Counted from the stretch's first letter, positions 8,562 to 62,246 are shown. The stretch: DNA of 64,000 nt from Isurus oxyrinchus (GCA_026770705.1 JANJGN010000007.1:96410001-96474000), one strand, 5' to 3'. Numbers and translations: made by a program. Notes: a model not told the origin generated them from the letters alone.

Positions 8562-8674
8562 CTTCATTTTCTTGAATTGGCATCGTTTCCAAATAATGAG
8601 GGTCACCATTAAAAAGACCAGTCCATCCCATGCACATCTGAAAATCAGTAAGTAATGGGAGATGCTTTCAGGAT
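8562..8674 (-). pseudogene. Gene C: transmembrane exon (DPESISHYLLIFRCAWDGLVFLMVTLIIWKRCQFKKMK)
   Basis: attttag| and AAG|gtaaca. Aligns with the gene A TM (LLI...KRCxxKK). At 113 nt it is one short of frame-preserving. Confidence 0.78.
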
Positions 8675-8752
8675 CTAAAATATTAATGCAAAACATGTAG
8701 ATATGAATGCTATGACCAAATTGTTACCCAAACGCAGCCGTAAGCAATGGGA

Positions 8753-9008
8753 TAAAAGCAAAAGACTGTGTATTCTGGAAATCTGAAATAAAAACAGATA
8801 CTGCTGGAAAAACTCAGCAGATCTCCACTCAGCATCTGTGGAGAGAGAAACAGAGTTAACTTTTTGAGTCCGAATGACTTTCCTTCAGAGCTCAAGAAGA
8901 AGAGAAATCGTCCGAAGAAGAGTCATATTGGACCGGAAACGTTAACTCGGTTTGTCTCCCCACAATTGCTGCCAGACTTGCTGAGTTTTTCCAGGATTTT
9001 ACGCTGTT
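8753..9008. mobile_element. Inverted pair of Penelope-like termini
   Basis: Left arm ctggaaaaactcagca...gagttaac is complementary to right arm gttaactc...tgctgagtttttccag. Confidence 0.7.
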
Positions 9009-9579
9009 ATGTAAGTAATGGACTCTTGTATGAAAAAAAATATTCTCAGCAAGTATGTGGTCTGAAACAGCAGCATCATTTCAATCAATCATTGCTACTT
9101 CATCTTTTTATTCACGGGAGTATAGTTTTAAGAGAAAATATATTTTCTGAGACCTCAACTGAATCTGCTTTCCTGTTGGTAATAAGATTTTGATTGTAAG
9201 TGGCAATGTAGAATTTTTAATATTGTGCAGTTTCTAACTGGTAAATTTGCAATTTGCAGCAGATTTTGAGCACTGATTGTGGGGTGCGGTTAACGGAGAT
9301 TTTGCCCCAAAGAGTCAGTCGGGAATTATTTCCCAAGGAGTCAGCTGCGCGCTTGACCCGTGACTCCAGAATTCCTGGAGGAGTCGCACGATGAGACAGT
9401 AATTGTGCAGCTTTTGGGAAGGATTTCGCCTTTATTAAAAGCGAGCAAACGTAACTCGAAGTCCTACACTTTCACGCAGTTAAAATCTGCTGAACGAGTC
9501 ATACATGAAAAGCAGAAATTGCCTAACCGGGAGAGTCGTAGCAACTTTAATCTGTAATAACTGAGATCTCCAACCTTAC

Positions 9580-9885
9580 CTGTGTTGGTGACAACATGAG
9601 TGGCTACGGTTGAAATTTGGAGCGCACTGTTAGAGACCGGACAGGTATAAACAGTTGGGGTCCGGACAGGCTGCATATCTTGCAACCGGCTAAAAGCTTC
9701 ATAAAGTCCATTGGTGTTGAGTTTAATGACGGTACTTATCCCTGTTATAGTTTTTTTGCCATATTTATGCTAAGTGAAGCTGATATTCTCCGGGTAAAAA
9801 GGGGATGTCACACACAGAACCGTCAGATGTGCAGATGAATCCTTTTCAAATTGCTGAGAGTTGATTTTCAGTGGAGTTGGAGGAG
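9580..9885 (-). pseudogene. Gene C: C1 exon with nonsense codon
   Basis: 306 nt with intact splice sites. About 34 substitutions plus a 6-nt gap versus gene A C1 by hand count. The invariant Trp TGG is TAG (9772-9770), and YTCLVSH has become YTCPVSN. Confidence 0.92.
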
Positions 9886-9904
9886 CTAGACAAATAAAGA
9901 ATAG

Positions 9905-10670
9905 AAAAACATCTACTTTTCACCACGACCGGAGGTCTCAAAGCATTTTACAGGCAATAAAGTATAGTTGAAGCGCAGACACTGTTGTATTAAAGAAGAT
10001 TTGGCAGCCAATCTGTGAACAGCAAACTTCCACAAACAGCAATATGATCGTGACCGCGTAATCTGTGTTTTGTGTTTTCGAAGACAATTGGACTTGTAAG
10101 ATAAGGAGGTTAAAAACAAAACAAAACTGCGGATGCTGGAAATCCAAAACAAAAACAGAATTACCTGGAAAAACTCAGCAGGTCTGGCAGCATCGGCGGA
10201 GAAGAAAAGAGTTGACGTTTCGAGTCCTCATGACCCTTCGACAGAACTTCAAGGAGGTTGTTTTGCAGGGTTGTGGGAGAAAGGCTGCTGTGGCGGTTAA
10301 AAGCGACTGCACAGGAAGTGGCAGCCAATCTGTGAAGAGGAAACTTCCACAAACAGCAATATGATCGTGACCAGATAATCTGTGTTTTCTGATGCTGTTT
10401 AACGGATAAAGGTTGGCCAGGACACCAGGGATTACTCCCCTGCTCCTCTTCAGAATAGTGCCATGGGATCTTTCACATCTACCTGAGAGCAGAAAGGGCC
10501 TAGGCTTAATGTTTCATCCGGGGAACCGCACATCCGGCAGTGCAGGACTCCTGGAATATTGCACTTGAGTGATAGCCTTGATATTTGTGCTCAAGTCCTG
10601 GAGTGGGATTTGAACAAAGAGCCCTGTGCCTCAGAAGAGGCGAGTTTGCTACCAACGCAGCTACAGTTAA
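9905..10670 (-). mobile_element. Deu-domain SINE (SacSINE1/AmnSINE1-like), rearranged
   Basis: Deu core (GGTGTCCTGGCCAA...CAGATTATCTGGTCA...TTGCTGTTTGTGG...ATTGGCTGCC) on the minus strand. Same intronic position as 60320-60780 in gene A. Confidence 0.7.
10112..10250 (-). mobile_element. Short Penelope-terminus insertion with 9-bp TSD
   Basis: TSD aaggaggtt at 10103-10111 and 10251-10259. Nearly identical to the reverse complement of 34840-34940. Confidence 0.8.
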
Positions 10671-11207
10671 TAACCATTGATCAGGATTGCCAGCCAAACG
10701 TATTCCAGTCCATACCTGGCCCCATGGCCGGGGGTAGGGCGGCTGGGGGCATTGAGTTCAGTCTTTGTTATCAGTACTCACATCCTAAACGAAATTTTGC
10801 CGTTAACCGTAACCAATGCAGATAAATGAAACTGTCAAACAGGATGACATTCATTTGCAGATCCGCGCCCGTATCTAATCTACTCGAAAAATGCGCGTTC
10901 TTAACGAATGCTGCAATTTTAACTTCAATAGTCTGTTGCATACAAATTTCGCGTGCATTTTGAAATAAAACAACTAACAGATAATGCTGTAAACAGATAA
11001 ACAGATTAATATTGCTGAAGTATTGAAATATAAATCAGCATGTAACATGTAGCAGTCACAAGTGCAGTTTGAATGCATTAATGCATTGCTATGTACTAGT
11101 CGTAGAATTTAATTTACATTTTGAATCCATTAAAGCACAATCGAGAAATGTTTAGGTGTGAAATATTACAATCACAGTGACCTCATTAGCCTTTTTCTTC
11201 TACTTAC

Positions 11208-11318
11208 CCCACACTGATAAATTGGACCCCGTTCCGTTTCCAACCGTTTTGCCTCGATGGGCGACAGTACAATAGTATATTCCTACATCCTGCAAACTCA
11301 CATTGATTACCTGAAGAT
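11208..11318 (-). pseudogene. Gene C: 3' part of VJ-type V exon ([36 protein letters not shown])
   Basis: Close copy of the 3' third of the gene A V exon with intact donor GGG|gtaagt. Homology stops at about 11318, and no first Cys, WW motif or leader was found upstream. Confidence 0.88.
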
Positions 11319-13051
11319 CGGCCTTCGATCGGTCTTCGTATGCTCCTTGGATTAAGTGGAAACTCTTTGACCTGAAGCGTAGGCAACCTTCCATGTTAAC
11401 TTGAGCAGATGGACGAATACTGCATCAAACCAAGCAGCAGCTGAGAAGTAAAAAACAGGATAAGTCCTGAGCCCATCCTCCTTCCAAGACGTGACTCGGC
11501 CCCTGGGAGGCTGCACTAGCTGAACAACAGTTTCCAGCACTAGGCGGTGACTTCTGATCAGTCACATAGAATCAGGGGAGTTCATTTCTCAACTCGGTTG
11601 CCATAATGCCTTTCCCTCAAGAAATCTGTTCTTTCGGCAGGAGAAGTTTTCACTGTCTCAATAGGCAGAGTGTTTGTGATAATATGCGAACAATCACATT
11701 GTCCAACTCCGCTGCCGTGGTGATCCAGCCATTGACTGTCCTAAGCAGCTTCAAGGAGTAAAACTCTGCCCACAGATAGCCTGTAAGTGCCAACACTCAC
11801 TCTGGCCTGATTGAAAAGGGATCTAACGCAACACTAGCAGAGGGGCGCTACCACCAGCCAAAAGCTTCTGAAAGATGGAAGGTTAATAAGACCATCATTG
11901 TTTGTAGTACACACTGTGGCCAGAGCAGGCCGGCGGCAAAGGGAGTGGATGAGTTGGATGATTGGTGGATGAGTTGCTAATTGAAGGGAATATAACTTCA
12001 TGAATATTGTTAAACCTCTGAGGGTTGTTACAGCTGCAGCTATCCGGGCAACTACAATTATTCCATGGCACTCCTTCCCAATGTTTTGCTGGTGTTGAAG
12101 AAGCTTTAGGGAATCAGGGCACCAGATATTCGCTGCCGGATACTGTCTGCAGTGAAACTCTCGGCGATGCCAAGGCCATGGCGGCTATGTCTCTTCGGTT
12201 AGAGTTGATCACGGCCTGGCATTTGTGTTGCGGAAACGTCCTCAGGCTGCAGGTCTTCCTGCAATCTGGCAAGGGCTGCATGATTAGCTCGGTAAACGTT
12301 ATTGGAATGGAATATTGTGCAACTATTAGCCCTCCACAGCATCCCCGCTCCCCTCCCCGCCAACCCCTTTCAGATCTCGTTGTGTAATAAGGTCACGCTT
12401 AAAGAACACTTTACCTGAGCAACTGCCTTAGCGATGACCCGGAGTTGCAATGAATATCCTCCAAAATGACAATTATATTGTTTTTTTTGTCTGTTGTGAT
12501 TCCAAAGATTCGAATGGCTTTTCCCTTGCGCCCACTGAGTTCAGTTTCTGTCAGAGCCCCATGTCGCCACACTACTCGAAAACACCACCAAACCTTGCCT
12601 TTTCCGGACATTACCGCCGGCCATTTTATTGCCGGACTCCACGACTGTTTGAGGAGATGCTCAGACATTGTTCCACTCGCGCCATTAAAGGCAACCAGTT
12701 CCTCTTAAATGGGAGTTGCCGCAACAAAATGAAATGTTTCTGAATAAAGACATGGCTCCAAGCCCATCTCATTACAACCCCCAGATTCTCTGGTGCCGTT
12801 TACAAAGACCTGGTGCAGCTGCTGCGCAGCAGGCAGGCAGGAGCTGTGTTCTCCCCTGTGAGGTGCAATCCCTTCAGGCAACACGCTGTCTGTCAGTGGG
12901 AGGTTAATGCCAGTGGTTTAGTTCCTAAGACTGGCTGCAAAACCGCAAAGTGTTCACTGACCCCACCAGAGCTCTCAATATCAGAACCTCCGCCACCAAC
13001 AACAAAAATGATTGTTTACATCTGTTAACGCTATAAAGCGAACCTGATATC

Positions 13052-13390
13052 AACATACGAAATGGAGTAGAAGTAGGCCATTCGGCCCCTCGAGCCTGCT
13101 GCGCCATTCAATAAGATCATGGCTGATCTGTTTGTGTTTCAAATTCCACATTCTCATCTACCCCCGATAACCTTTGATTCCCTTGCTGAACAAGAAACTA
13201 TCTACCTCTGCCTTAAAAATATTCAATGACCCTGCCTCCACCGTCTTCTCAGGCAGAGAGTTCCAATGACCCACAGCCATTTGGGAGAATGAAATTTACC
13301 TCATCTCTGTCCGACAAGGGAAACCCCTCTTTTTAAAGCAGCACCCCCTGGTTCTGAGATCACTCACAAGAGGAACATCCTTTCCACATT
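13052..13390 (-). mobile_element. CR1 LINE 3' end
   Basis: gtaggccattcggcccctcgagcctg...catggctgatc 3'UTR signature, also seen at 41790, 47720, 54720 and 63510. Confidence 0.7.
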
Positions 13391-13399
13391 CTGCACGCA

Positions 13400-13920
13400 A
13401 AATTCGACAATGAACCACGTAAGATAATACCGTGGATGACCAAAAACTTCGTTGGAAAGTTAGACTTCAAGAAGTGCCTTCAAAGAGGAGCCCATGGTAG
13501 AGAGGTGGGCCTATTCAGTTAGCGACGTCCAAAGATTGCGACTATGGCAACTGAAGGCACGGCCACCAATGTTGGAGCGATTACAATCAGGAATGTTGCA
13601 GAGGCCAGAATTGGCAGAGCGCTGGTTGTCAGTCCGGAGGGTGTTGCAAAAAAAGGGGTGAAGGGGCATTTGAAAACATGGGTAATAATTTTAAAATGAC
13701 GGTGTTGTCTAACCGGAGCCAGTGGGGGCCAGTGAGTGCAGGAGTGATAGGTGAAGGGGACTAGGTAGGAGCTAGAGCATGGGGAGCAGATGACCTGAGG
13801 TTAATGGAAGGTTTAACATGCGAGTCCAACCAACAGTGCATTGAAATAGTCAGCTATGGGGGCGACCAAGGCCTGGATGGGCATTACAACAGCGGAGTGG
13901 CTGAAGCAGGAGTAGATGTT
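13400..13920 (-). mobile_element. Decayed L2-like LINE fragment
   Basis: Similar to 39540-40630 and 44365-45490. Confidence 0.5.
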
Positions 13921-14717
13921 GCTCTCTTATTCTCTGTTCACACCTCCATCACCTCCAGCCTCGCCTTTCATATTATAACCCTGCATGACTCCCTGCAAAA
14001 TGCTGACTTCTGCAATCTCTACAGCAGACTCACTCCATTGTCTTTTCCTGCTATTCCTACGTTCTGGACTTCCCAAACTCAGCGCTATTGCAAATTTCAC
14101 TTCTTGATAGCTCACCTTGAACAACATAGAAATTAATCAACTTTAACAAGGGCATTCACAGAACACTTCCCAAAGGTGTCACTAACATCTTCCTCCTGCA
14201 GGGGACGGTAGCGTACAGCACATTGCAGGAGGCTGTGACTGCAAGAAGCCGAGTCTGCCTACACATTGTGTCCCTCCTCTGTAATATTGGCAGGGACAGA
14301 ATCATGCCAGTGTTGAAATGCAGACGCTGGAGGAGGTGCCATATAGGCTTTCATCACAACTTGTTCCCATCTCCATTCTTACTTCTATTTCACATTCTAC
14401 ATGGCAATCTGAGACCGCTTTCACAACCCATTTTTCTATCTCCACTATTACTCACACTAAAAGTTAAAGTTTGTCCCTCTTGTCCATTTCAGTTGATCAA
14501 AATGTGAGAAGCCCTCTGTCACTCCAGGAGCAGGGGACCGGCCTTCCTGAAGATGCAGCATAATTAGAACTGACCTGAGCAAGCAGTAGGTCAGAGACTG
14601 CTACCATGCAAAAGTGAGAGAGAACACTCACTTACCTGAAGACAGGTAGCAAGTGTGCCGGAGCTAAACCAGGGGATCAGAGGCTAAAGGTGCCGGTTAA
14701 CCAGAGGGTGAGACCAC

Positions 14718-15380
14718 ACAACATCCTGGGGGCTACGATTGACCAGAAACTGCCCTGGACAAGCCATATAAATACTGTGGCTACAAGAGCAGGTCAGAGT
14801 CTAGGCATCCTGCCGTGAGAAACTCACCTTCTGACTTCCCAAAGCCTGTTCACATCCACAAGGCACACATGTGATGGAATACTCTTCACTTGCCTGGATG
14901 AGTGCAGCTCCCACAACACTCAAGAAGCTTGATACCGTCCAGGAGAAAGTAGCCCATTTGATTGGCACCCCATCCACAAACATTCTTTCCCTCCACCACT
15001 GACGCACAGTAGCAGCGGTGTGTATCATCTACAAGATGCTTTGCAGGAATTCAACAAGGCCCCTTCGACAGAACCTTCCAAGTCCACAACTGCTACCAAC
15101 TAGACAGAGAAGGGCGGCAGGTAGATGCGAACACCACCGCCTAGAAGTTTCCCCCCAGGTTACTCGCCATCCTCACTTAGAAATATATCACAGTTCCTTC
15201 ACTGGCACTGGGTCAAAATCCTGGAACTCCATTCCTAACAACATTGTGGGTGTACCTAAACCACATGGACTGTGCAGTTTAAGATGGCAGCTCACCTGCA
15301 CCTTCTCAAGGGTAATTAGCAAGGGGTAATAAATGCCAGCCTCGCCAGTGATGCACACATCCCATGAATGAATAAAAAAA
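14718..15380 (+). mobile_element. LINE 3' fragment (family of 51852-54590)
   Basis: gtggctacaagagcaggtcagag...gatggaatactct...cccatgaatgaataaaaaaa tail. Confidence 0.7.
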
Positions 15381-15650
15381 GTATCGCTGCACCAGGGAGC
15401 TCATATGCTGAATTCAAGGGCCTAGGCTATTGGCAACTGGCAGACACAAGGAAATGTTGGGTGCTGCAATGTGCATGCTGCCAGCGGGCTGCATAGCAAG
15501 TCTGGAAAAAAAGAGGATTTCCTCTCCAACAGGTATCACAGCTTGACGGAGAGCATCAGAGTGGTATTGGCTACATGTGAGTGGTGTATGCCATCCTCTC
15601 TCTGAATGACAGCACGGTTGTATCCCAGCCAGCCACTCCACCAACGCCAT

Positions 15651-18600: not shown

Positions 18601-19733
18601 CAATCCAGAGTACAAGGTTCGATGGTTTAATTTTGATTGATGTCGTCCAACTTCTGTTCAGCTTCGGTGATGACACGAGGTCGTCCTCCAGCACTTTCCG
18701 TGTTTAGTTGGTTGAAAACTTGCATTTCAATGCCTCTAACAGTAGTTTCCCCCTTTTCCTTTTTACAGGTGTTTCCTCAGAGAGAGAACAGGTTATAAAG
18801 ATATGAGGTAAAGAGGCTCTAAATGTTTTCTCTTTGCAGGCCAGAAGCATTTTGTTGTGGAATTACTAAAACCTTCCACACACGGGGGAAAGAGGGTTTA
18901 GGTCTTGTTGCTTTCAGGCTCGGAGCTACTCTGCACAGCTCTCACACAAAACCTGGTCACCTGGTTAGGAGCCAATTTAAACGCTGTTGCCCGGCAGTTT
19001 CCTTGGCCCAGGATTCCTTTCCAGCACCATCCTGTCTTTCATGGCACACTCTGTTGCAGGACTGCAACGGTTCAAGCAGGCAGGTCACACCATCTTTTCA
19101 AGGGCAATTATGGATGGGAAATAAATGCCCGCCAGCCAGCGATACCCACATCCCATGAATAAATAAAAATTACTTGAAATAATTAATAAATGCGTTCATT
19201 AATCATTGCAGCATTGCACAATGGTGTTCTTAGGGAGATTGCAATATGTCTCCGATGCATCAATAACCTCTGTCTAAATGGCTTTATCCTCATCGATCAG
19301 CAAGATAATTAGGAAGTCATTCGCACAGCCACAGTGTGCTGACCTGCGAGAACCAATGCAATCTGAAATCAAGCGAATATCTTGTACCACTTGGCCATGA
19401 TTCAACTTAAACGAGGCTTTCGGCTGTCTCAAAACTCTACAGTAGTGTTAAAGATTTTTCTAGTGCCTTCTTTCTTTTCAGCTGTCATCATGTATTGTTC
19501 TTTGTTGGTAATATGGTAATATGAGTAGTTTCAATAAATTCTCAAAGACTGCTGGCTGCAAAACACTAACTTATTGCAACATATGTACAGATATAAGAAC
19601 ACTCGATACTAGCATCTGACCATGCTTACTCCCCTCAAATCACAGGAGTCTATGTCACTTCCTCCCATGACATCACAAGCTAGTGCAATTAACCCCTGAT
19701 GGAAATTAGTCTAACACACTCCATTATACGACA
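15651..19733 (-). mobile_element. Decayed Gypsy LTR retrotransposon with nested insertions
   Basis: Related ~245-bp LTRs at 15651-15900 and 19491-19733. PBS-like tgatgacagc follows the 5' LTR, and a PPT-like tract precedes the 3' LTR. Remnants of gag (KWYKIFA*FQIA, ~19350-19400), RNase H (ETDQKPL, 17589-17852) and integrase are present. Confidence 0.75.
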
Positions 19734-21307: not shown

Positions 21308-21315
21308 GATATATG

Positions 21316-21353
<38 letters not shown>

Positions 21354-21357
21354 TAAA
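21308..21357. repeat. (TA)n microsatellite
   Basis: Read directly. Other simple repeats: (CA)n 18521-18540, (TA)n(GA)n 20232-20261, (AGAT)n/(AGAC)n 34303-34337. Confidence 0.9.
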
Positions 21358-22484: not shown

Positions 22485-22551
22485 GGTTGGGGTGGGGCAT
22501 GGGGTGGGGTGGGGGGCGTTGGTGGTGGGGGTGTGGGGAGGGGGGAGGGGG
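22485..22551 (+). repeat. G-run tract
   Basis: Eight runs of 4 or more G within about 65 bp. Confidence 0.8.
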
Positions 22552-31266: not shown

Positions 31267-31321
31267 ACTTATTGCAAATGTATCAAAGAGAAATCACATA
31301 GCTGGCTCCTTACCCTTACAG

Positions 31322-31428
31322 TTATTGAGTTAACGACTTCTTCACGATGAAAGTAACGAGAGCTAGAAATATTAATACAGCTCCCGCATATCCAGAAATC
31401 TGTAGATAAATGGGCGTGTGCCCGTGGT
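31322..31428 (-). CDS. Gene B exon 4: transmembrane exon ending in early stop (DHGHTPIYLQISGYAGAVLIFLALVTFIVKKSLTQ*)
   Basis: Acceptor ttcttacag|. TAA at 31324-31322 lies 8 nt before an intact donor AGG|gtaagg (exon end 31314). The exon is 115 nt, one more than a frame-preserving 114. Confidence 0.82.
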
Positions 31429-32129: not shown

Positions 32130-32438
32130 CTGAATTAGAATTGGAGTTAAAGTAAACAGCCATGGCTGGACTCTGCAGTGTGCGGTGAGACACCATACAG
32201 GTATACACCGCCCCGCTCCGGGATGCCTGTGCCGTTTTTAACCTGCTGGAGGCTTCAAACATCCCCTCCGAATTCACCTTTTGAACAGTGCTGATCCCAG
32301 TGACAATCTTTCTGTCGTTTTTATACCAAATGAAGTTGAGAGACTCCGGGTAGTACTGAGCCGTTTCACACACGAGTTTTAGAACAGATGAGTTCGTCCG
32401 GAATACTTTGGGTATCAGCCGCACGGGTTCTGGGGAAG
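32130..32438 (-). CDS. Gene B exon 3: Ig C1-set domain
   Basis: 309 nt, phase 1/1, ttccacag| and TCAG|gtaagg. LVCETAQYYPESLNFIWYK...FEASSRL...VYTCMVSHRTL. Confidence 0.93.
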
Positions 32439-33919: not shown

Positions 33920-34231
33920 CGTGCACAACAAGTCTCGATCCGGTTCCATTAACGATCCAGTTCCCTGTATTTCTTATTCCGCAGTAATAGACTCCGGCGT
34001 CGGGGAAACGGACATTCAGGATCTGGAAGGAAGCCGTTTCCTTCTTAAATTGAAAGAATCGTTTTCTGCCGTCAGAATCCGGTTGCAATAAGGTTTCATC
34101 GCCGAGTCTCCACCAATAAACCTCCACATCTGAGTGAACCTGGACAGAGCTCGTTGTACAATGGAAGGTAATGTCTGCACCCGCCAACAGAATGGCGCTT
34201 TCAGGAGTTTGCCTCACTGCAGAGGAAGCAA
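33920..34231 (-). CDS. Gene B exon 2: VJ-type Ig V domain
   Basis: 312 nt, phase 1/1, ttttatag| and CACG|gtaagc. Motifs VRQTP, ITFHC, VYWWR, ASFQILNVRFPDAGVYYC, and NGTGSRLVV. Confidence 0.95.
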
Positions 34232-35014: not shown

Positions 35015-35060
35015 CTTCGTAAATAACCCCCAGGGCCCATATACACTGACACCCAAACAT
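35015..35060 (-). CDS. Gene B exon 1: signal peptide (MFGCQCIWALGVIYE)
   Basis: 46 nt, phase-1 donor GAAG|gtattt. Aligns with the gene A leader (QCIWALGVIYE vs QCLAILGIIFT) with the same donor position. Confidence 0.75.
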
Positions 35061-41787: not shown

Positions 41788-43620
41788 AAGAACATAACAA
41801 GAGGTAGGAGCAGGAGTAGACCCTAAGACCCTTGTAGCCGGCTACGCCATTCAATATGATCATGACTGACATTGGGCTTCAATTCAACTTTCCCGCCGTC
41901 TCCTCCATATTCCTTGATTCCCTAAGAGGCGAATTATGTGTACATCCCAGCCTTAAATATAGCAACGATAGAGCATCCACAGTCCTCGGAGTAGAGAATC
42001 TCAAAGATTCAGAACCCAGCAGAATTAATCTTTCAGTGCCTACCATGTCAAGCCCCTTCAGGACCTTGTGCTTTTCAATGAGATCACCGCTCATTCTGCT
42101 AGCTCGAAAGAATAAAAGTTCAATTAATGCAGCCTCACATCATAGGACAATCTCTTCAACCCAGGGGTCTTCAAGGCATTACAACCAATGCAAGTCCCTT
42201 AAATATAGAGGCCGAAACTGCACACAGTGCACTAGGTATGATCTCACTATAGCCCTTTGCAATTGTTGCAAGATTTCCTTATTCATGTGCTCCATTTCCA
42301 ATGCAATAAAGGCCAACATGCTATTTGTTCCTTGTACGAGCACACACAGATATCTGAACTTCAACATTTATAAATTTCAAGCCTTTTAAAAATATTCTGC
42401 TTTTCTACTATTTTGACCAAAGTGAATGACCTCACACTTCTGCACATTGTACTGCACCTGCCACCTTGTTTCCCGCTTACTTAACCTGTCTGTATCTCTT
42501 TTTAGCCTCTCCATTTATCCCTCGCAACTTACATTTTCATCCAGGTTTATATCATCAGCAAACTTGGATACATTACTCTGTGTTTCTTCATCTGAGTCAT
42601 TAATATAGGTTGTAATTAACTGAAGCATCAGCACTAATCTTTGTGACACTCCATGAGACATTACCTACCAACTTGTAAATACCCAATTTACGCCTATTCT
42701 TTGCTCCCTGTCCATTAACCAACCCTCTATCTATGCTAACATATTACCCCCAACTTCGTGACTACATGAACCCTTGTCTTGCCTGTTAAACCTTTATGCG
42801 CCACCTTCTGGAATTTCTTTGGAAATTCAAGTATACGACATCTACTGGTTTCCCTTTATCTACCCGATTAGTTACATCTTTAAAAAAATCATCAATTTGT
42901 CAATTTTTCCCTTTAGTAAAACCATGTTGACTTTGGCTGATCATACAATACTTTTCTAAGTACATTGTTAAGGCTTCCTTCATAATAAATTCCAGTTCTT
43001 CCCAGATGATTGATGTCAGGCGTTTGCTCTGATGTTCCGATTGTCTCTCTCGCTCTCCTTTCTTGGATAGTGCTGTCATATTTGCTTACTTCCAATCTGC
43101 TGTTACCATTCCAGAATCTACAGAAGCTTGAAAACTCATAGCCAGTGCACCCACTATCCTTGAAGCTATGATTTTTAAAGCCTTTTGATGTAGGTCACCA
43201 GGTCCAGATTTGAATCCATTAAAGTTTCCCAAATACTTATTCTCTGTTGTTATTAATAGCCTTAAATTCCTCACACATTTTTTACCCTCTTTTCCAGGTA
43301 TGTCGCTCGTGTTTTCTACTGTGCATACAGGCAACTACATATTTATTCAATGCATCTGCCATTTTCACATTTCCTATAATAATTTTTCCTGCCTCTACTT
43401 TTAAGGGCCCAACGTTTACTTTAGCTACTCTCTTCCACTTTTAAAAGCACGTACAGCCTGCTTTCATATTCTTGGCTGGTTTGCTCTTATATTCCATTTC
43501 CCCATTTAAATCAAGGTTTTAATGCCCCTTTGTTGGTTTCTAAAACATTTCCAGTCGTCAGACTTACTGCTATTCTCTGCAACATTATAAGTCTTTTTTT
43601 ATTCGAGTACTTAACTTGCT
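41788..43620 (-). mobile_element. Decayed CR1 LINE
   Basis: SGPGDLHQKALK...SVDSGMVTADWK, IVRSYLVHCVQF and the CR1 3'UTR. Confidence 0.8.
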
Positions 43621-45490: not shown

Positions 45491-46814
45491 TTGGTATGTC
45501 AGCACGAGAGTGGAAAACATAACTAAGCGAGTGAATAGTTTCTCTTCTGATTCTACTTGCTGCATTTACTTTAAATTGTGTACTTACTTTATCTGCAGTT
45601 TTTGAAATGTTATGTAGACGCTGTAAGTCCACAAGTTAACTGTCAAAAGTATTGCCGTTCGGCATTCAATGTTATTTCCACCTGGTGTCTCATGAGAAAT
45701 TATCCTATTGCACTATCACTATTTGCAGAAGAACAACAAAGCTCTCCTCGGGTCCTGGCCAAATGGATCAAAGAACATCACTGACAGAGTTATCTGATCC
45801 CTCTTCCAATGATTGTGGAATCCTGTTGTGCTTTTTTGCCAATCCCAATTGCCCTTGCTGACAATAGTAATTACATTGAAAAATTACTTCCCTGCGAGGC
45901 GGTGTGGGACGAGTTGTGTTTCCAGACAGCGAAGTATAAACCTTGCTTTATTCGCTGATTCTTCCTGGCTCATTTATTGCTCCTTGATATTATTTTTGTT
46001 TCAACACAATCTAGCCCTTAAATCCAGATGTGAATAGAAAAGGAAATTAAGCCGAGAGCAGAACCTGTTGCCTATTCCCTACCGCCCGTTTCGCGCTACC
46101 GGGGAATTTGTATCTCCCGCAAAAATTCCTGTTTTTACCAATATTCGAGAAACTCGATTATTGGTTCCTGACCGACCACAGGGCTCCGATTAAGGATTAT
46201 CTTGTCAATGCGAAAACAACACTAAATCCAACCCTTTCCAAAGCTGCACAAAATTCAGACAGCAGAAACAGCAAATACAAATATGAACACGAATCAGATG
46301 CCTGGTCCTCGACGGCTGGGGCCTGTTTGAGCAGAACTTGAGTTTTTGCAACCTATTTCATCCGCACCTTCTTCAATAGGGTGAAGGGTAGCGACCGCTT
46401 CTAAGTTAATGCTTGTCGCCTATTCTTAAAAACTGGTATCTTACACCTTTCTCCCAGAGCTGCTGTTGTTACTTTGTCCGTTGTTGATGTCATGGTAATT
46501 GGCTTTTAGTGAGATATACACAGAAATAAAAAGGGTTCCGTATTAGGACACCAGTATCACGTGGCTCTTGGTTCCGTGTACATGATGTCAATTATTTGTT
46601 TTCCCACCTTTAACTGAGCATACTCTGTGCTCTTATCCTTATAGTGAGGCTTTACTGTTTTCTTTGGCCCTGTCATATCCAGAGCAGCGTAGGTCAGCTG
46701 AGTGTCGGGTAGTCTTTGCTTGGCCTGTGAAAACAATGTTTGGGATTATAATTAGTTCGATATTTTACATGTCTGTAGTCTAAGGTTAAGCACAGTCATT
46801 GGGACCAAAAATAA

Positions 46815-47245: not shown

Positions 47246-47471
47246 AGCGAGAGCCTCGCAGAATCAGTGTTAAAGACAACAGAGCACCCAAGTGTATGAA
47301 AGCTATTTTTAAGGTGTTAATGACAGATATTCGGTATTTCTCTGTTCGGCTCTTCAAACCTACCTCCATATAAACTGTACTGTCTTGACGTTTAGGCCTT
47401 GGGGCTTTCTGGGAATTAGTCGTATCGAGTGCAGCATAAAGCGCCAACATTTCGGCATCACCTTGAATGGA
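47154..47471 (-). CDS. Gene A exon 6: cytoplasmic exon with ALYAAL (ITIM-like) and TVYMEV (ITSM)
   Basis: Acceptor ttgtctttcag|TCC in phase 0, in frame with ORF 47154..47450. The 3' end is uncertain because of a possible donor GAG|gtaggt at 47364/47363. Confidence 0.72.
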   Translation of the reverse strand, partial: SIQGDAEMLALYAALDTTNSQKAPRPKRQDSTVYMEVGLKSRTEKYRISVINTLKIAFIHLGALLSLTLILRGSRYYVSRNSVWPRGNKVVGHSSSGGLSTKYIR

Positions 47472-50947: not shown

Positions 50948-50991
50948 CTGCAGTACGGGGTAATCGGATTTTTCACCATTCTTCTGCTCAC
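50948..50991 (-). CDS. Gene A exon 5: cytoplasmic exon 1 (GEQKNGEKSDYPVLQ, ITIM SDYPVL)
   Basis: 44 nt, phase 1 to 0, ttcttattag| and CAG|gtatgt. The phases link the TM exon to the last exon. Confidence 0.75.
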
Positions 50992-51625
50992 CTAATAAGA
51001 AATGAAATTTAAGACTTTACAGTAAGCTTTTACTCAGCTTCTAAACACACGTTGGGAGATCCAATTTAAAGTATAGCATGGCCTAGGTGTCACGTTTGGA
51101 ATGGTTACCGTCCAATCAGTTTTTGGTAATAGGGATTGGATTGTTGTGCCGCTGGCCGAGCAGCGAGAGTCTGATTCGGAAATCGCGTGGGCAGAAAAAA
51201 GAACTTCACGCCCAGAGACCCTAATGATGTAAAATTGCAGACAACGAAAGGAGACTTTGCAACAAAGCACTGGCCGAGTGCAAGGCTCTGGTGGGGTCTG
51301 AGGAGGGAATTTGGAAAATTCCAACCGACTTAAAAATTCAAATCCACCGCTACATCGATATAGATAAAACACATATGCAATAAATCAGTGTTGACATCTG
51401 AGTAAGTGAAGCCGACAGGAGTGATTGTGAAAGGCTGCATGTATTTTAAATTTCAGGAAAATCTGCTCTGATCAGTTATGGCCTCTGTTCCTGGTAGACA
51501 GGCTATTGTTTGAACAGATCAGTTGCAATCAACGAACTTACTCTACATTTAAGGCTTTTTCTTTCGCACGCTCTCTCTCTTTAAAAGTTCTGTTTACTTT
51601 AGTAAGAAGGAGAAAGTATTCTTAC

Positions 51626-51736
51626 CGTGATTTTTCTTTGTGACACAACGCTTCGCAATAAAGAGTCCCAGTACCAATAATACGAACCCGCCTCCTGCAG
51701 AGGCAGAAATCAGCAAGAAGCTGGTGATCTGAGCAC
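51626..51736 (-). CDS. Gene A exon 4: transmembrane exon
   Basis: 111 nt, phase 1/1, cttctag| and CACG|gtaaga. GAQITSFLLISASAGGGFVLLVLGLFIAKRCVTKKNH: an uncharged hydrophobic span followed by basic stop-transfer residues. Confidence 0.88.
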
Positions 51737-51851
51737 CTAGAAGATCGAAGTGAAGTGTATAAATAAAAAAAACTCTATGCTGTTCAATTCAATAAAACCA
51801 TGACCAAAATCATAAGAAATCTACAACTTTTCCAGTAATTTGTGTTAATGT

Positions 51852-54590: not shown

Positions 54591-54711
54591 CAGAAGTGCA
54601 TTGCCATGCATTTGTGTGGCTTGGGTGTCACTTCCCATTTATCAGCCGAAGCCTGAATGTTCACCAGGTCTTGTAGCTTATGGGCAAGGTCTGCTTCAGT
54701 ATCCGAGGGCA

Positions 54712-56915
54712 TACAAACCTACAAATCAGAAACAGAGGTAGCGCATTCAGTCCCTCGAGCCTGCTACGCCATGCAATATGTATGAATTTGGCCTCAACTC
54801 CACATTTTCGCCTACCTCCAATCTCCTTTCACTCTCTTCTTAGTCAAGAACCTATTTACCTCTGTCTTAAGTTATTCAGTGGCCCTGCTTCCACCGGTCT
54901 CTGGAGAAGAGAGTTTCAAAGAGGAATGACCCTCTGAGAGAATGAAATCTTCCTCGTCTCCCTCTTAAATGGGAAACCCCTTATTTTCAAACTGTGTTTC
55001 CTATTTCTACTCTCTCCACAAGAGGAAACATCCTTTCAGCATTCACCCTATCACGTCTCCCCAGGATCTTATATGTTTCAATATGATCACCTCTCATTCT
55101 TGTAAACTCCAATGGCGCAGCCTATACAAACTTTTCTCATAAAATAACCCCTCCCTGCCCGACCACCACCACACCCACGCCCCCCCCCCCCCAATCCCAG
55201 GTATCAGTCGAGTGAACCTTCCTGAACTCCTTCTAATGCATTTATGTCCTTTCTTAAATAAGGAAACCATGACTGTCCACAGCATGCAGATGTGTTCTCA
55301 TCAATGCCCTGCACAACTGTAGCAAAACATCCTTACTTTTTATATTCCATTCCCCTTGCAATAAAGGACAACATTCCATTTGCCTTCTTAATCACTTGCA
55401 TACCTGCAAATTAACTTTTTGTGATTCATGTACCAGGGCACCCAGATACCTCTGCGCTTCAGATTTCTGCAATCTCACCATTTTCTCCATTTCTATTCCT
55501 CCTAACAAAGTGAACAAATTCACATTTCCCCACATTATACTCCACCTGCCAAAATTTTTCCCACTCACTTAACCTGTCTATGTCCTTTTACAGGCTCCTT
55601 ATATCTTTGTCACATCTTATTTTCCTATCCATCTTTGTGTCATCAGCAAATTTAGCTACCATATATTCGGTCCTTTCAGCCAAGTCATTGGTATGAATTG
55701 TAAAATTTGAGGCCCCTGCACTGATCCATGTGGCACCCCAATCACCATATCTTCCCAACCCAAAAATGATGCATTTATGTCTAATCTCTGTTTCTTGTTA
55801 GCTAGCCAATCTACTATATGTGCTAATATGTACACCTGCACCCTACACCAGGGCTTGGCCTAAATAGCCAAGTGGTTATGGTGCTGGGCTTGTAACCCCA
55901 AGATCAAGAGTTCAAATCTCACAATGGCAAGCTATGAAACAATGTAACTTCATCTGAATAGGAACAGATGGAAACGTGTTTGTACTCAAAAGAGTTACAC
56001 CCTATATTAGGGCTTGGCTTAAATAGCCAAGTGGTTATGGTACTGGGTTTGTAACCCCAAGATCAAGAATTCAAATCTCACAATGGCAAAACTATGAAAC
56101 AATGTAACTTCATCTGAAACAGATGGAAACGGGTTTGTACTCGAAAGAGTTACACCCTACACCATGACCTCTTAATTGTGCTCGGTGGGCACCGCGGGGA
56201 CTGGGGTGTTTTCTTGACCCCTTTAATCACATTTTGATTTAAAGTTTGTAAGTTTCCTTTAAACTTTGTTCTTGGTTTTACGGCTGGCCTGAATTAGGGG
56301 CTGTGCCTGATTTATCCCGATTTTGTTGATTTGTTTTTCATTTAAAAGATTATCAAGAGCTCAAATCTCACAATGGCAAACAATGTAACTTCATCTGAGT
56401 AGGAACAGATGGAAACATGTTTGTACTCGAAAGAGTTACAGACTAATTGATATACTCGAAAGAGTTACACCCTACACCAGGGCTTGGCCTAAATAGCCAA
56501 GTGGTTATGGTACTGGGTTTGTAACCCCAAGATCAAGAGTTCAAATCTCACAATGGCAAGCTATGGAACAATGTAACTTCATCTGAATAGGAACAGATGG
56601 AAACGTGTTTGTACTCAAAAGAGTTACACCCTATACTAGGGCTTGGCTTAAATAGCCAAGTGGTTATGGTACTGGGTTTGTAATCCCAAGATCAAGAATT
56701 CAAATCTCACAATGGCAAACTATGAAACAATGTAACTTCATCTGAAACAGATGGAAACGGGTTTGTACTCGAAAGAGTTACACCCTACACCATGACCTCT
56801 TAATTTGTGCAATAACCTTTGATGTGGCACTTTGTCAAATGCCTTTCGAAGTCTAAGTACAGCAGAGCAACAGGTTCCCCTCCATCCACATTACTTGTTA
56901 CTTCCTCAAAGAATC
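54712..56915 (-). mobile_element. Decayed CR1 LINE interrupted by tandem array
   Basis: CR1 3'UTR at ~54720 and WLANKKQR...GVPHGSVQGP. The LINE sequence resumes after 56792. Confidence 0.75.
55839..56792 (+). repeat. Tandem array of ~155-159-bp tRNA-Thr(UGU)-like units (4 full + 1 partial)
   Basis: Units start at 55851, 56010, 56480 and 56639, with a partial unit at 56352-56440. Each full unit has TAGCCAAGTGG, TTGTAA and GAGTTCAAATC or GAATTCAAATC. Confidence 0.9.
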
Positions 56916-58019
56916 CCTTACAGAGTAACGAATGGTACTGTGCATTGTGGAGGTTCAGCGAGTGTGCAATCTACAAGATGCAATGCAACAACTCACCAAA
57001 GCTCCTTGGCAGCACTTCCCAAACCTGCAACCTCTACCCACTAGACGGACAAGGGCAGTAGATGCATAGGAACAGCACATTTGCGAGTTCCCCTCCAAGC
57101 CAGACACCATCCTGACTTGGAAATATATTGACATTCCTTCACTGTCAGAGTCAAAATCCTGGAAATCCCACCCTAACAGCACTGTGGGTGTACCTACACC
57201 ACATGGATTGCAGCAGTTCAGCTCAGCTCACCACCACTTTCTCAAGGGCACTTAGGGATGGGCAATAAACGCTGGCCTAGCCAGCAATGCCCGCATCCTG
57301 TGAAAGAATAAGGCAAGTCAGTTTTATGAAACAAATTTAAAATGCTGAATTTCTCTTATGTTTAAAGAAACACCTCGGGCTTGATGTATGGTGGTCCCTT
57401 GGGTACATTATTGGTTAAGTGCTAAGTAGCAGAATGTAGTGGTAAAATGATATTTTTGAATGGATCAGGGTTCAAGATTAGAACCAATGCTTTACTTGAT
57501 ATGAGGAGTACAATTTGAAGAGTATTAATTATACAACATTGGTAATGCAGTAAATTATTACAAAGATAGTGAGAGATTTTGGTAATACATAAACTAGAGA
57601 GTAGGGTCACAAATGGTAAGTGCAATTTAATGCAGGCAAAAATTAAGTGTGCAGTTTGTGTGAAAAAATATCGAGGGATGATAATCTGAGGAGCATACTA
57701 AAGCAAAGATAACTAGGAATGAATGGATTAAAAAAATAACTAGGTGCATATAAATCTTTCAAGGTGGCAGGGAAGTTGACAAGTCGATCAAGGAAGCTTT
57801 TGGGAAATTAACTTTACAATAGAAGCATTGAACCATGTTAAATTTTAGAAATATCTGGTTAGTTCTCAGCTAGTGCATTGCATATAATTAATTTTAGGAA
57901 GGGTGTGAAAGCCTTGGAAAAGATGACAGATAATGTTATCCAGGCATTACAGGGTTAAGGATCTTCAACTGTGTTGAGAGATTGGAGAAGCTGTGATGCT
58001 GTGAATACATGAGATTAAG

Positions 58020-59623
58020 GGGATATCTAATCAAGGTATTTGAAGAATATTAAGGTGGATGAATCCCCAGAGCCACATTGGATCTACCCCAGAGTACTGA
58101 GGGAGGCAAGGGAGGAGATTGCTGGGGCCTTGACAGAAATCTTTGTATCCTCACTGGCTACGGGTGAGGTCCCAGAGGACTGGAGAATGGCCATTGTTGT
58201 TCCATTGTTTAAGAAGGGTAGCAGGGATAATCCAGGAAATTAGAGGTGGGTGAGCCTTACATCAGTGGTAGGGAAATTATTGGAGAAGTTTCTTCGTGAC
58301 AGGATTTACTACTATTTGGAAGCAAATGGGCGTATTAGTGAGAGGCAGCATGGTTTTGTGAAAGGGACATTGTGTCTCAATAACTTAATCAAGTTTTTCG
58401 AGGAAAAGACAAAGATGATCAATGATGGAAGGGCCGTGCATGTAATATACATGGATTTCAGTAAAGCCTTTGACAAGGTCCCTTATGGCAGACTGGTACA
58501 GAAAGTAAAGTCGCATGGGATCAGAGATGAGCTGGCAAGATGGATACAGAATTGGCTTGGTCATAGAAGACAGAGGGTAACAGTGGAAGGGTGCTTTTCT
58601 GAATGCAGAGCTGTGAAAAGTCGAGTTCCGATGAGATCAGTGCTGGGATCTTTTCTGTTTGTAGTATACATAAATTATTTGGAGGAAAATGTAACTGGGC
58701 TAATTAGTAAGTTTGCAGATGACACTATGGTTGGAGGAGTTGTAGATAGTGAAGAGGATTGTCAAAGGATACAACAGGATATAGATCAGTTGGAGACTTC
58801 GGCAGAGAAATGGCAGATGCAAATTAATCCAGACAAATGTGAGGTAATGCATTTTGGAAGGTGTAATACAGGCAGGAATTATACAGTAAGTGGCTGAACC
58901 CTTAAGTGCATTGATGGGCAGAGGGATCTGGGTGTACAGGTCCACAGATCACTGAAAGTGGCAACACAAGTGGATAAGGTAGTCAGGAAGGCATGTGGCA
59001 TGCTTGCCTTCATTGGCAGGGGTACTGAGTATAAAAGCTGGGAAGTCATGCTGCAGCTGTATAGAACCTTGGTTAGGCCACACTTGGAATATTGCATGCA
59101 ATTCTGGTCACCACGGTTCCAGAAGGATATGGAGGCATTGGAGAGGGTGCAGTGGAAGTTTATCAGGATGCTGCCTGGTCTGGAGGTTATTAGCTATGAG
59201 GAGAGGTTGGAGAAACTCAGATTGTTCTCACTAGAGTGACGGAGATTGAGGGACAACTAGATAGAGGTTTACAAAATTATAAGTGGCATGGACAGAGTAG
59301 ATAGTCAGAAGCTGTTTCACAGGGTGGAAGAGTCAATTACTAGGGGACATCTATTTAAGGTGAGAGGACAAATCTTTAGGGGAGATGTGCAGGGCAAGTC
59401 TTTTACGCAGAAGATAGTAAGTGTCTGGAATTCGCTGCTAGAGGAGGTAGTGGAAACAGGTACGATGGTGTTTAAGAGGCAGCTTGACAAATACATGAAT
59501 AGGATGGGAATAGAGGGATACGGAACCCGGAAGTGCAAAATGTTTTATTTGACGGACAATATGATCAGCGCAGGCTTGGAGGGCCGAAGGGCCTGTTCCT
59601 GTGTTGTACTTTTCTTTGTTCTT
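58020..59623 (+). mobile_element. Relatively young 5'-truncated CR1 LINE in gene A intron 3
   Basis: ORFs 58040..59668 with QHGFVKG, YMDFSKAFDKV, SKFADDT and LVRPHLEYCMQFWSP, ending in a (ttctttg)n tail. Confidence 0.95.
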
Positions 59624-59988
59624 TGTTCTTTGTATGCAATGTTACGAAAGGTTTATTTGATCAAGTAGGGAGCAACTGTTCTCCAAAAACTGGGTCTTAA
59701 TTTGCAGTCATAGATCTAAAGCAACTGGCAAAATAAAATGTGAGGGGATGTGAGCAGAATTATTTTCTCACCTGAGGTTAATGTTTAAAACATACAATCT
59801 GAAATGTTGTTGGAAGAAATTTATGTCGGGGTTTTTCGAAGACAATTGGACATGTAGGCTAAGGAAATTGATTTGCAGGGTTGTGGGAGAAAGGCTGCTG
59901 AGAGGGTCAAAAGAGGCTGCGCAGGAAGGCTGGGCTAAATGGCCTTTTCCGAAGCTGTAAATTTCTATTTCTATATCAGAACTCTTAC

Positions 59989-60300
59989 CTTTGTTGGGGT
60001 TGGTGAAGATATGAGTGGCTATGGCTGAAATTTGCAGCGCACTGTGAGAGACCAGACAGGTATAGACAGTTGTGGTCCGGACAGGCCGCGTCTCTTGCAA
60101 CCGGCTAGAAGCTTCATAAAGCCCATTGGTGTTGAGTTTAATTATGGTACTTATTCCTGTTATAGTTTTCTTGCCATATTTATACCAAGTGAAGCTGATA
60201 TTCTCCGGGGAGAAAGGAGATGTCGCACACAGAACAGTCAGAGGCGCAGAAGAATCCTTTTCAAGTTGCTGAGTGTTAATTTTCAGTGGAGTTGGAGGAA
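59989..60300 (-). CDS. Gene A exon 3: Ig C1-set domain
   Basis: 312 nt, phase 1/1, tttttctag| and AAAG|gtaaga. Open frame VPPTPLKI...LTVLCATSPFSPENISFTWYK...GLYEASSRL...VYTCLVSHSAL, with C1 hallmarks CxxxxFxP, W and YxCxVxH. Confidence 0.93.
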
Positions 60301-60319
60301 CTAGAAAAATGAAGAATCG

Positions 60320-60780
60320 AAAAACTTCTATTTATACAGCACCTTTTACCACTACCGGAGGACTCAAAGCGTTTTACAGCTAATAAAGAACATTTGATGC
60401 GCAGTAATGAAGAAGATTTTGGAGCCAATCTGTGAACAGGAAACTTCCACAAAGAGCAACATGATCATGGCCAAATAATCTGTGTTCTGTGATGCTGTTT
60501 AACGGATAAAGGTTGGTCAGGACATGAGGGATTACTCCCCTGCTCTTCTTCAGAATAGTGCCATGGGATCTTTCACATCCACCTTAGAGCAGAGAGAGCC
60601 TAGGCTTAATGTATCACCCGGGAACTGCACCTCCGGCATTGCAGGACTCCTGGAGTATTGCACTGGAGCGTCAGCCTTGATATTTGTGCTCAGTATGGAG
60701 TGGGTCCTGGAGTGGGTCCTGGAGGCCAAGATTCTTGTGCCTCAGAAGAGGCGAGTGTGCTATCAACCCAACTACAGTTA
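60320..60780 (-). mobile_element. Deu-domain SINE in gene A V-C1 intron
   Basis: Deu core present. Paralogous position to 9905-10670. Confidence 0.7.
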
Positions 60781-61715
60781 ATACCATCAATCAGGGTTAC
60801 TAGCCAAACATTTTCCAGTCTATTCCTGGCCGCATGGCCTGGAGTAGGGCGGCTGGGGGCATTGTGTTCAGTTAATGTTATCAGTACTTACATTCTAAAC
60901 GACATTTACACGTCTCACTACTCTTTGGTTGTAATTTGAAATGTTATCGCCGAGCGAAGAAAAACAGAGCAGGCGGGTGATCGCATGCGTAGCCCGTTAA
61001 AAACTCCACCCAATTTTCCATTCAAATGGGAAAGAAATTTGAACGGGATGTGATTTGGACTGTTGGGCTGTTTTGCCGTTCGGCTGTAGGCCAATTTCAC
61101 TCCGTTGAATCTAAAATTTGAATCGGAAGTAGAATTGACCAAGTTAGCGGGAATTCGACACCAAGGTCCCGGATGATGTCATATTTGATGGAGTCCGAAA
61201 TGATGAGGAAAAGGAGGCGAGGCGGTTAGTTCAAATTACACAGTGTGAACTTTAACCATTAGTAATGCGCGCTTAAGATATTGTCCATTAACTTATGAAT
61301 ATGGAACATCTGATCTCAATAGAAGAGTCCAACACCCCCGCCCCGACCCCGGCGTAAGCAACGTAGCAAATTATGAAATAGAATAAGGATAGCATATTTC
61401 CTTTCTCAAGATCCGCACTAGTGTCCAATACTGTCCAGATATGCACCTTTAGCAACTTGGGGATTTTAACTTCAATGGTTTGTTGCATACACGTTGGGAT
61501 ACAACAATTAACAGATGATGCTTGATCAATATTTGTCAAATATTGTGATATGCGTTAACATGTAACATGCAGCAGTCACAAGTGCAATTTGAATTTATAC
61601 ATATTACTCGTGGCATTTAATTTACAATTTGAATCCCTCAAAGCACAATCGAGAAATGTTTAGGTGTGAAATATGACAGTTAGAGGGACCTCATTAGCCT
61701 TTTTGTTCTACTTAC

Positions 61716-62036
61716 CTCCCACGGATAAATTGGACCCCGTTCCGTTTCCAACCGTTTTGCTTCGATGGGTGACAGTACAATAGTATATTCCTGCATCCTG
61801 CACTCTCACATTGATTATTTGAAGAAAGCCGCTGAATTTAGTCTTGAAGCCAATCACTTTCCTGTCATTTTGTCCCGTTGTGAGATATTGATTATCTCCC
61901 TTTTTCCACCAGTAAACATTGACACGCGGACCGTCTTGAAATAAAGGAACCGAGCAATGGAAGGAAACGTTTGTGCCGGTGTTTGTGTTCACACTCTCGG
62001 GGAGCTGAGTGACTTTGACTGACTTTTCACCGGAAC
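61716..62036 (-). CDS. Gene A exon 2: VJ-type Ig V domain
   Basis: 321 nt, phase 1/1, acceptor ccccatag| and donor GGAG|gtaagt. Motifs VTQxP, FHC, YWWK, FLQIINVRVQDAGIYYC, and J-like G strand [10 protein letters not shown]. Confidence 0.95.
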
Positions 62037-62191
62037 CTATGGGGAAAGATAACAATGATACCGTATTACAGGAGGGAAAACGCGAGGCTTAGGGGCTCAG
62101 GCATTAACTGGAAAGGAGAATAAAACATGTATCACAAGAAAGTTAAATCAAAATGCGATTCATAGAGAAAGCAATGTATAATAGCAGATAC

Positions 62192-62246
62192 CTGTGAAGA
62201 TGATCCCCAGAATAGCGAGGCACTGAGTGACAACATTCGCCAGCAT
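62192..62246 (-). CDS. Gene A exon 1: signal peptide (MLANVVTQCLAILGIIFT-G)
   Basis: ATG at 62246, 18 codons + 1 nt, hydrophobic core, donor CAG|gtatct in phase 1. A 155-bp intron joins it in frame to the V exon. Confidence 0.85.

Follow-up and report, generated by a model that had tools for sequence, protein, structure and literature searches.

The stretch analysed here is a 64,000-nt window of Isurus oxyrinchus (GCA_026770705.1 JANJGN010000007.1:96410001-96474000), which is without N and in whose coordinates all positions below are given. Three paralogous receptor genes of the immunoglobulin (Ig) superfamily, termed copies A, B and C, lie on its minus strand; their variable (V) exons end at 11208, 33920 and 61716, and the spacing between them is about 23 and 28 kb, in keeping with the three same-strand paralogues named in a preliminary description of this DNA. 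The window holds one intact inhibitory gene (copy C), one short-tailed gene (copy B) and one dead fragment (copy A), all of a shark SIRP-like family; the best explanation, which we consider probable, is that it forms part of a cartilaginous-fish SIRP-like receptor gene cluster in which copies C and B are intact and copy A is dead. Members of this family are predicted to be non-rearranging type I membrane proteins consisting of a leader, a V domain that includes a J-like strand, a single C1 domain, a transmembrane (TM) region and a cytoplasmic tail. Profiles of the V, C1, TM and tail exons were built from the corresponding regions of the family, and in six frames they detect exactly three V matches (one partial), three C1, three TM and one set of tail exons; no additional Ig, TM or tail exon is found in the window by these profiles in any of the six frames. 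An Rfam search of the window gives no match, and the window has no gene content outside the family. Spliced models were assembled from window coordinates and used for frame checks and for local BLAST against retrieved proteins (P0001 and onward); database searches used single exons or the retrieved homologue proteins rather than the joined models.

Copy C has seven exons between 62246 and 46557 on the minus strand, with AG/GT at each junction and a joined open frame of 372 aa; phase-1 introns separate the first four of these, the leader, V, C1 and TM exons. The exons are as follows; ITIM and ITSM denote the immunoreceptor tyrosine-based inhibitory and switch motifs.

62192-62246, minus strand: copy C exon 1, split leader (ATG, 18 codons plus 1 nt, donor GT); tblastn to the P0001 and P0003 leaders, splice and phase check.
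61716-62036, minus strand: copy C exon 2, V-set, YYC-x10-NGTGSNLSV, phase 1/1; Pfam V-set 2.5e-11, family V profile 146 bits, AG/GT.
59989-60300, minus strand: copy C exon 3, C1-set with a VYTCLVSH motif, phase 1/1; Pfam C1-set 1.4e-10, 77% identity to S. canicula P0001.
51626-51736, minus strand: copy C exon 4, stalk and TM (FLLISASAGGGFVLLVLGLFIAKRC), phase 1/1; tblastn to P0002-P0005, TM profile 41.7 bits, AG/GT.
50948-50991, minus strand: copy C exon 5, short cytoplasmic exon (EQKNGEKSDYPVLQ); AG/GT, frame kept, matches GVKNDGERANSPEQ of the homologues.
47364-47471, minus strand: copy C exon 6, cytoplasmic, with LALYAAL (ITIM-like) and STVYME; tblastn, tail profile 23.6 bits, AG/GT.
46557-46724, minus strand: copy C exon 7, last cytoplasmic exon, with QLTYAAL, STEYAQL, IMYTEP and the stop; tblastn 57-70% to P0002/P0004, tail profile 50 bits.

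The V exon of copy C runs from the A strand through DAGIYYC and ten further residues to NGTGSNLSV, and the gene retains every conserved Ig residue and canonical splice sites. Within the tail, QLTYAAL is a canonical ITIM and STEYAQL is ITSM-like; the gene is complete only with three cytoplasmic exons, down to 46557, which corrects its earlier description. Contigs of four public runs span the exons, introns and flanks of copy C at about 2.6% divergence; because introns and flanks are covered, these contigs are genomic DNA of a close relative or of another individual and have no bearing on expression. No splice joints are present in the contigs of the four runs, the sole "joints" falling in a repeat at 60.5-60.7 kb, and a search of public runs gave none recorded as RNA. 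Of the differences listed between copy C and the genomic contigs, those in the V exon comprise four amino-acid changes and one silent change, those in the C1 exon two silent changes and no amino-acid change; the V-exon changes are at most a hint of V-domain polymorphism like that of human SIRP-alpha, with tiny counts and contigs that may stem from another species or a paralogue.

The introns of copy C contain several repeats. The 8.2-kb intron that separates the C1 exon from the TM exon contains, antisense to the gene at 58250-58894 (plus strand), a reverse-transcriptase open reading frame of the long interspersed nuclear element (LINE) type (Pfam RVT_1 1.9e-25); degenerate relatives of it occupy 24.9-26.2 kb and 23.9-24.4 kb, in the interval from copy A to copy B. 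The same long intron holds a direct-repeat block at 55839-56810 with units of about 160-340 bp that are 80-98% identical. The intron between the V and C1 exons carries a high-copy repeat (60444-60691), at which contig depth reaches the thousands with many loose ends; this repeat recurs in the intron of copy A at 10323-10797.

Copy B has four exons between 35060 and 31322 on the minus strand, in phase, which encode 257 aa:

35015-35060, minus strand: copy B exon 1, leader (MFGCQCIWALGVIYE); scan for ATG, phase 1 and GT, matches the P0060 and P0033 leaders from residue 1.
33920-34231, minus strand: copy B exon 2, V-set, YYC-x10-NGTGSRLVV; Pfam V-set 2.3e-9, family V profile 111 bits, frame check.
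32130-32438, minus strand: copy B exon 3, C1-set, VYTCMVSH; Pfam C1-set 2.9e-11, family C1 profile 109 bits.
31322-31428, minus strand: copy B exon 4, stalk, uncharged TM and a six-residue tail, KKSLTQ; sequence read, joined frame, aligns with the P0060 and P0033 TM.

The V exon of copy B has a second in-phase acceptor option at 34216. A TM candidate near 31.77 kb was dropped, as the exon at 31322-31428 has an in-phase AG acceptor and matches the family TM. The frame of copy B stops after KKSLTQ, three codons ahead of an apparent former phase-1 donor, and a second stop follows. Two orthologues of copy B are colinear with it from the first leader residue, P0060 at 68% identity and P0033 (from Heptranchias) at 65%; their tails are likewise short and free of tyrosine. 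Because both of these proteins are also short-tailed, the short tail of copy B is, as judged from the compared sequences, not a private accident and appears to be conserved in orthologues of other sharks.

Copy A is a pseudogene fragment and an incomplete member of the family, of which three pieces remain:

11208-11334, minus strand: copy A V-exon remnant, E-F-G strands only; blastn breakpoint, V profile positions 60-101 only.
9580-9885, minus strand: copy A C1 exon; translation and comparison with copy C, 272/312 nt identical.
8562-8674, minus strand: copy A divergent TM-like exon (LLIFRCAWDGLVFLMVTLIIW); sequence read, TM profile 31 bits.

The fragment keeps the last 40% or so of the V exon, and the first 60% and the leader are gone. 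By blastn its DNA homology to copy C (90%) breaks off at 11317, within the V exon, and the V profile detects no V-like or leader-like sequence upstream of copy A in any frame. Displacement of the missing half upstream by an insertion is rejected, as no further V-profile match occurs, in any frame, in the adjoining 900 bp upstream or in the remainder of the window. At 9770-9772 the C1 exon reads TAG instead of the TGG that encodes the conserved Trp in copy C, and Asn replaces the His of its C-x-V-x-H motif; the TM-like exon holds an Arg and an Asp and has a donor phase unlike that of copies B and C. No match to the cytoplasmic tail exons is obtained with the tail profile in 1-8560. Copies A and C are 80-90% identical in DNA across the V part, the intron and the C1 exon, and comparison of the two sequences points to an origin of copy A by partial duplication or gene conversion, with subsequent decay. 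In the segment at 11318-11560 (minus strand) that replaces the 5' part of the V exon, one frame resembles the odd N-terminus (ALIDAVFVHL) of the Leucoraja model P0006; this segment may be a repeat element of a kind at times mistaken for an exon in gene prediction.

With the three copies in hand, the phase-1 exon plan of leader, V, C1, TM and cytoplasmic exons given in the preliminary description applies from leader to TM, with AG/GT sites, in copies B and C; it does not extend to copy A, which is leaderless and tailless, nor to the tail of copy B, which has no separate tail exon. The Pfam check that it called for identifies both a V-set and a C1-set domain in copies B and C. Its inhibitory and tailless members are also recognizable, copy C being of the inhibitory type and copy B short-tailed; its possible activating member is left unsupported, since the charged TM belongs to copy A and therefore sits in a dead fragment. 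The locus could be read instead as a graveyard of decaying duplicates with no working gene among the three copies, as copy A is clearly dead, copy B has two stop codons just ahead of its former donor and the public-run contigs at the locus, being genomic DNA, give no RNA support. This is very improbable: the 372-aa frame of copy C is maintained over seven exons with conserved Ig residues, canonical splice sites and a short branch (0.10) in the C1 tree described below, and the frame of copy B is intact, with short-tailed orthologues in distant sharks.

The V exons of the intact copies are unbroken from the A strand to YYC...NGTGSxLxV and are spliced directly to the C1 exon; the V segment and the J-like strand are thus fused in the germline. 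This is the arrangement originally proposed, in which a J-like G strand lies inside the V exon, and in copies B and C it is seen as a continuous exon ending in NGTGSxLxV; the spacer between YYC and NGTGS had been counted as 8 residues and has to be corrected to 10. Recombination signal sequences (RSS) had been reported as absent. A scan for heptamer, spacer and nonamer on both strands of the whole 64 kb finds a single weak site, at 42582, remote from any V; as shuffled sequence yields 0.58 RSS-like sites on average, this is at the level of chance, and the earlier report holds. Rearranging Ig and T-cell receptor (TCR) genes have separate V and J segments with RSS, and in the window the V and J-like parts share one exon. 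Receptor genes of cartilaginous fish with a germline-joined VJ domain, a single C1 and a TM region, as first described, are present at this locus.

The family is widespread in cartilaginous fish. The C1 exon of copy C matches proteins of Scyliorhinus, Mustelus, Heterodontus, Heptranchias, Hemiscyllium and Leucoraja at 50-77% identity, and all 43 word-indexed homologues of P0003, a full-length Heterodontus protein, come from sharks, rays or the chimaera Callorhinchus (43/43). About half of these 43 bear SIRP-type automatic names; the other automatic names in the family include Ig lambda-1 light chain-like, tapasin-related, major histocompatibility complex (MHC) II beta-like, NCR3LG1-like ("NCR3 ligand 1-like") and CD276. 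A length-filtered protein search with the V exon alone gave one candidate and no match, a blank that does not bear on longer relatives. An alignment of 12 family sequences has a single coherent architecture, and most of the retrieved chondrichthyan members have one C1 domain. Some annotated members of other species (P0011, P0015 and P0020) have a duplicated V or C1, such as V-C1-C1 in Amblyraja and V-V-C1 in S. torazame; they may be genuine variants or a fusion of adjacent genes, and if they are genuine a two-C1 form exists in cartilaginous fish.

An unrooted tree of chondrichthyan C1 domains with the d2 and d3 domains of sarcopterygian and tetrapod SIRPs resolves three groups, namely sarcopterygian/tetrapod d3, sarcopterygian/tetrapod d2 (99/98) and all chondrichthyan C1 (86/79), the chondrichthyan group being closer to d2 (92/79). 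A starred clade (99/96) unites copy C with its shark and ray orthologues, among which it stands beside carcharhiniform sequences on a short branch; the order within the clade follows the species tree, and copy B is the long-branched sister of the copy C clade. This pattern suggests conserved orthologues rather than a fast-diversifying local family. The locus had been described as a diversifying family, a view that does not agree with a copy C clade that tracks the shark and ray species tree or with orthologues of copy B that are 65-68% identical; nor is the family new in the sense proposed, as dozens of members are present in public shark, ray and chimaera annotations. In an incomplete search of the literature, no paper was met that gives the shark SIRP-like family a name or that connects SIRP with cartilaginous fish.

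Assignment to the SIRPs is based on colinearity over C1, TM and tail, on the ranking in an exhaustive search, on a test of the tail and on the shared overall plan. The exhaustive search compared a profile of the 12-sequence alignment with 1.84 billion representative proteins without a word index; names were obtained for part of the 150 matches listed. Among the matches named, 20/20 receptor-sized matches above the first named SIRP are chondrichthyan; the named receptor-sized matches outside this lineage are, among those listed, mostly annotated SIRPs from bat, corvid, duck, turtle, lizard, frog and coelacanth, the remainder being a lungfish protein, a skink protein and a turtle pIgR-like cluster. 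The nearest named receptor-sized relatives outside the cartilaginous fish are SIRPs. For bat and corvid SIRP-alpha, profile positions 123-357 pair with residues 250-503 in a single alignment that covers C1, the TM and the tail up to the last residue. BLASTP of P0007 against bat SIRP-alpha aligns V-C1 with d1-d2 at 2e-15 and gives a second, domain-shifted alignment over d3, TM and tail at 1e-13; hhalign of the family against corvid SIRP-alpha gives a probability of 99.1% and an E value of 1.4e-18 over 347 aligned columns, with the extra C1 domain of SIRP appearing as one large insertion. A tail-only hidden Markov model scores 35 bits on real SIRP-alpha tails versus at most 11.3 bits on 2000 composition-matched shuffles, and the four tyrosines near the C-terminus of copy C and its homologues, in two pairs, align site by site with those of bat and corvid SIRP-alpha. 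In ESM Atlas features the two nearest clusters are both SIRP-alpha (0.97, 0.96). The N-terminal V-set domain with a germline J-like G strand, non-rearranging, is likewise that expected of a SIRP.

Several observations weigh against this assignment. SIRPs have two membrane-proximal C1 domains (d2 and d3), and each gene of the window has one C1 exon. The ectodomain alone is generically antigen-receptor-like and fails to separate SIRP from Ig, TCR and UrIg: in a comparison of the family profile with PDB, SIRP-alpha comes after UrIg2 and an IgA heavy chain and a little ahead of Ig light chains, and SIRP V is a poorer match to the V exon alone than are the V domains of Ig light chains and I-set domains. 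Foldseek of the P0007 structure model (predicted local distance difference test, pLDDT, of about 70-88 in the Ig domains) against PDB returns Fab chains, a swamped result that does not discriminate between families. The C1 tree sets the chondrichthyan domains against SIRP d2 and d3, and part of the tail signal could be convergence, as ITIM/ITSM tails of unrelated receptors look alike. The genes are best regarded, from their sequences, as SIRP-like homologues and not as proven SIRPA orthologues.

An alternative would be a separate, undescribed antigen-receptor-like VJ-C1 family that descends directly from the ancestor preceding RAG and has gained a SIRP-like tail by convergence or exon shuffling; in its favour the V-C1 ectodomain scores UrIg2, Ig heavy and Ig light chains in PDB at least as high as SIRP-alpha, a single C1 is what a primordial receptor would have, and the incomplete literature search met no name for the family. 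We consider this unlikely, as the colinear homology to SIRP-alpha spans C1, TM and all four tail tyrosines to the C-terminus and the nearest named receptor-sized matches outside the chondrichthyans, among those listed in the exhaustive search, are mostly SIRPs; moreover, SIRP is itself already viewed as lying near the antigen-receptor precursor (PMC2785349), so that the two readings overlap.

The genes could also belong to another non-rearranging VJ family, such as NKp30/NCR3, UrIg/UrIg2, PRARP, NITR or B7/butyrophilin, to which we give very little credence. UrIg2 is the top PDB sequence match of both the C1 exon and the family profile, some automatic names in the family are of the kind "NCR3 ligand 1-like", "CD276" and "tapasin-related", and the J-like motif is similar to that of NKp30. 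However, the UrIg2 score of the C1 exon adds up three weak domain matches, each UrIg2 C domain matching at 13.6-16.4 bits. In UrIg and UrIg2 several C domains in series follow the VJ domain, and in the window one C1 exon is followed by the TM exon. An NKp30-type gene has a single VJ domain, then stalk and TM without C1, whereas a C1-set exon is present in all three copies; NKp30 is not found among the exhaustive-search matches listed, and NITRs are generally known as teleost receptors without C1. Shark UrIg2 has nine to eleven C domains and no ITIM tail described (PMC12227049). Of the affinities that the preliminary description had left open, to SIRP/NKp30-like or other known non-rearranging families, the SIRP-like one is thus favoured by the C1-TM-tail colinearity and the search, and the NKp30-like one is disfavoured by the presence of a C1 domain.

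Copy C is intact and orthologous to a gene that is conserved in both sharks and rays, and it has the four-site tail layout of SIRP-alpha and a fifth tyrosine. On the SIRP-like interpretation, its V domain is expected to bind a cell-surface ligand, as SIRP-alpha and SIRP-gamma bind CD47; kinases of the Src type would phosphorylate the ITIM/ITSM tyrosines, and the phosphorylated tail may recruit the tandem SH2 domains of SHP-1/SHP-2 and dampen cell activation. Copy B, with its uncharged TM and near-absent tail, may be a non-signalling partner or a decoy comparable to SIRP-gamma. Ligand binding, phosphatase recruitment, cell type and expression are inferred for these receptors, whereas the gene structures, the types of domain, the lack of RSS, the orthologues, the colinearity with SIRP-alpha and the lesions of copy A are observed in the sequences.

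The published structure of the V-C1-C1 ectodomain of SIRP-alpha has been presented as a link to antigen receptor evolution, and SIRP is proposed to be a relative of the antigen-receptor precursor on account of a VJ-like V domain paired with C1 domains (PMC2785349). It is conceivable, though we hold it doubtful, that the single-C1 V(J)-C1-TM form present across the cartilaginous fish is the ancestral SIRP architecture that preceded duplication into d2 and d3, possibly expanded into an undescribed, megabase-scale polygenic system of inhibitory and tail-less receptors; if true, it would provide a living model of the proposed "V-C1 receptor on myeloid cells" from which antigen receptors would have arisen. 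The many SIRP-like genes of sharks, rays and chimaera that have a V and just one C1 would push the family back to the base of the jawed vertebrates, and their simpler architecture can be set beside those of UrIg, Ig and TCR. As the public names of shark SIRP-like genes are inconsistent, a shared name would be useful to comparative immunology. The content of the window itself is mostly ordinary: a conserved inhibitory gene, a conserved short-tailed paralogue and a pseudogene.

Among known systems, Ig light chains and TCR share with the shark genes the V-C1 ectodomain fold and the G-x-G bulge of the G strand, the best Foldseek matches being Fab chains, mostly light; the shark genes differ from them in the germline fusion of V and J, the absence of RSS and the possession of their own TM and signalling tail. 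NKp30 (NCR3) resembles them in its non-rearranging VJ domain, for which it is cited in PMC12227049. It is not known to have a C1 domain or an ITIM tail. PRARP genes, which are non-rearranging VJ genes of chicken, are cited in PMC10751288. UrIg and UrIg2 are described non-rearranging shark VJ-C genes (PMC12227049, PMC10751288); like the genes of the window, those of elasmobranchs (PDB 9dmx) do not rearrange and combine a split leader with a one-exon VJ and C1-type domains (PMC12227049). Shark UrIg2, with its nine to eleven C domains, forms disulfide-linked dimers (PMC12227049), whereas the genes of the window have one C1, no stalk cysteine and a tail of the SIRP-alpha type. From the tetrapod SIRPs the shark genes differ in having one C1 domain rather than two and in a V domain that is not specifically SIRP-like by sequence; unlike SIRP-beta, the intact members in the window lack the basic TM residue of the DAP12-binding type. 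With the tetrapod SIRPs (SIRP-alpha/SHPS-1, SIRP-beta and SIRP-gamma) they share an N-terminal V domain with a germline J-like strand, a C1-set domain, a single TM and a tail. The tail of copy C has four tyrosines in the same order as SIRP-alpha and at similar spacing, ending just past the fourth site, and, as with SIRP-alpha beside SIRP-gamma, the shark locus holds tailed and short-tailed paralogues together.

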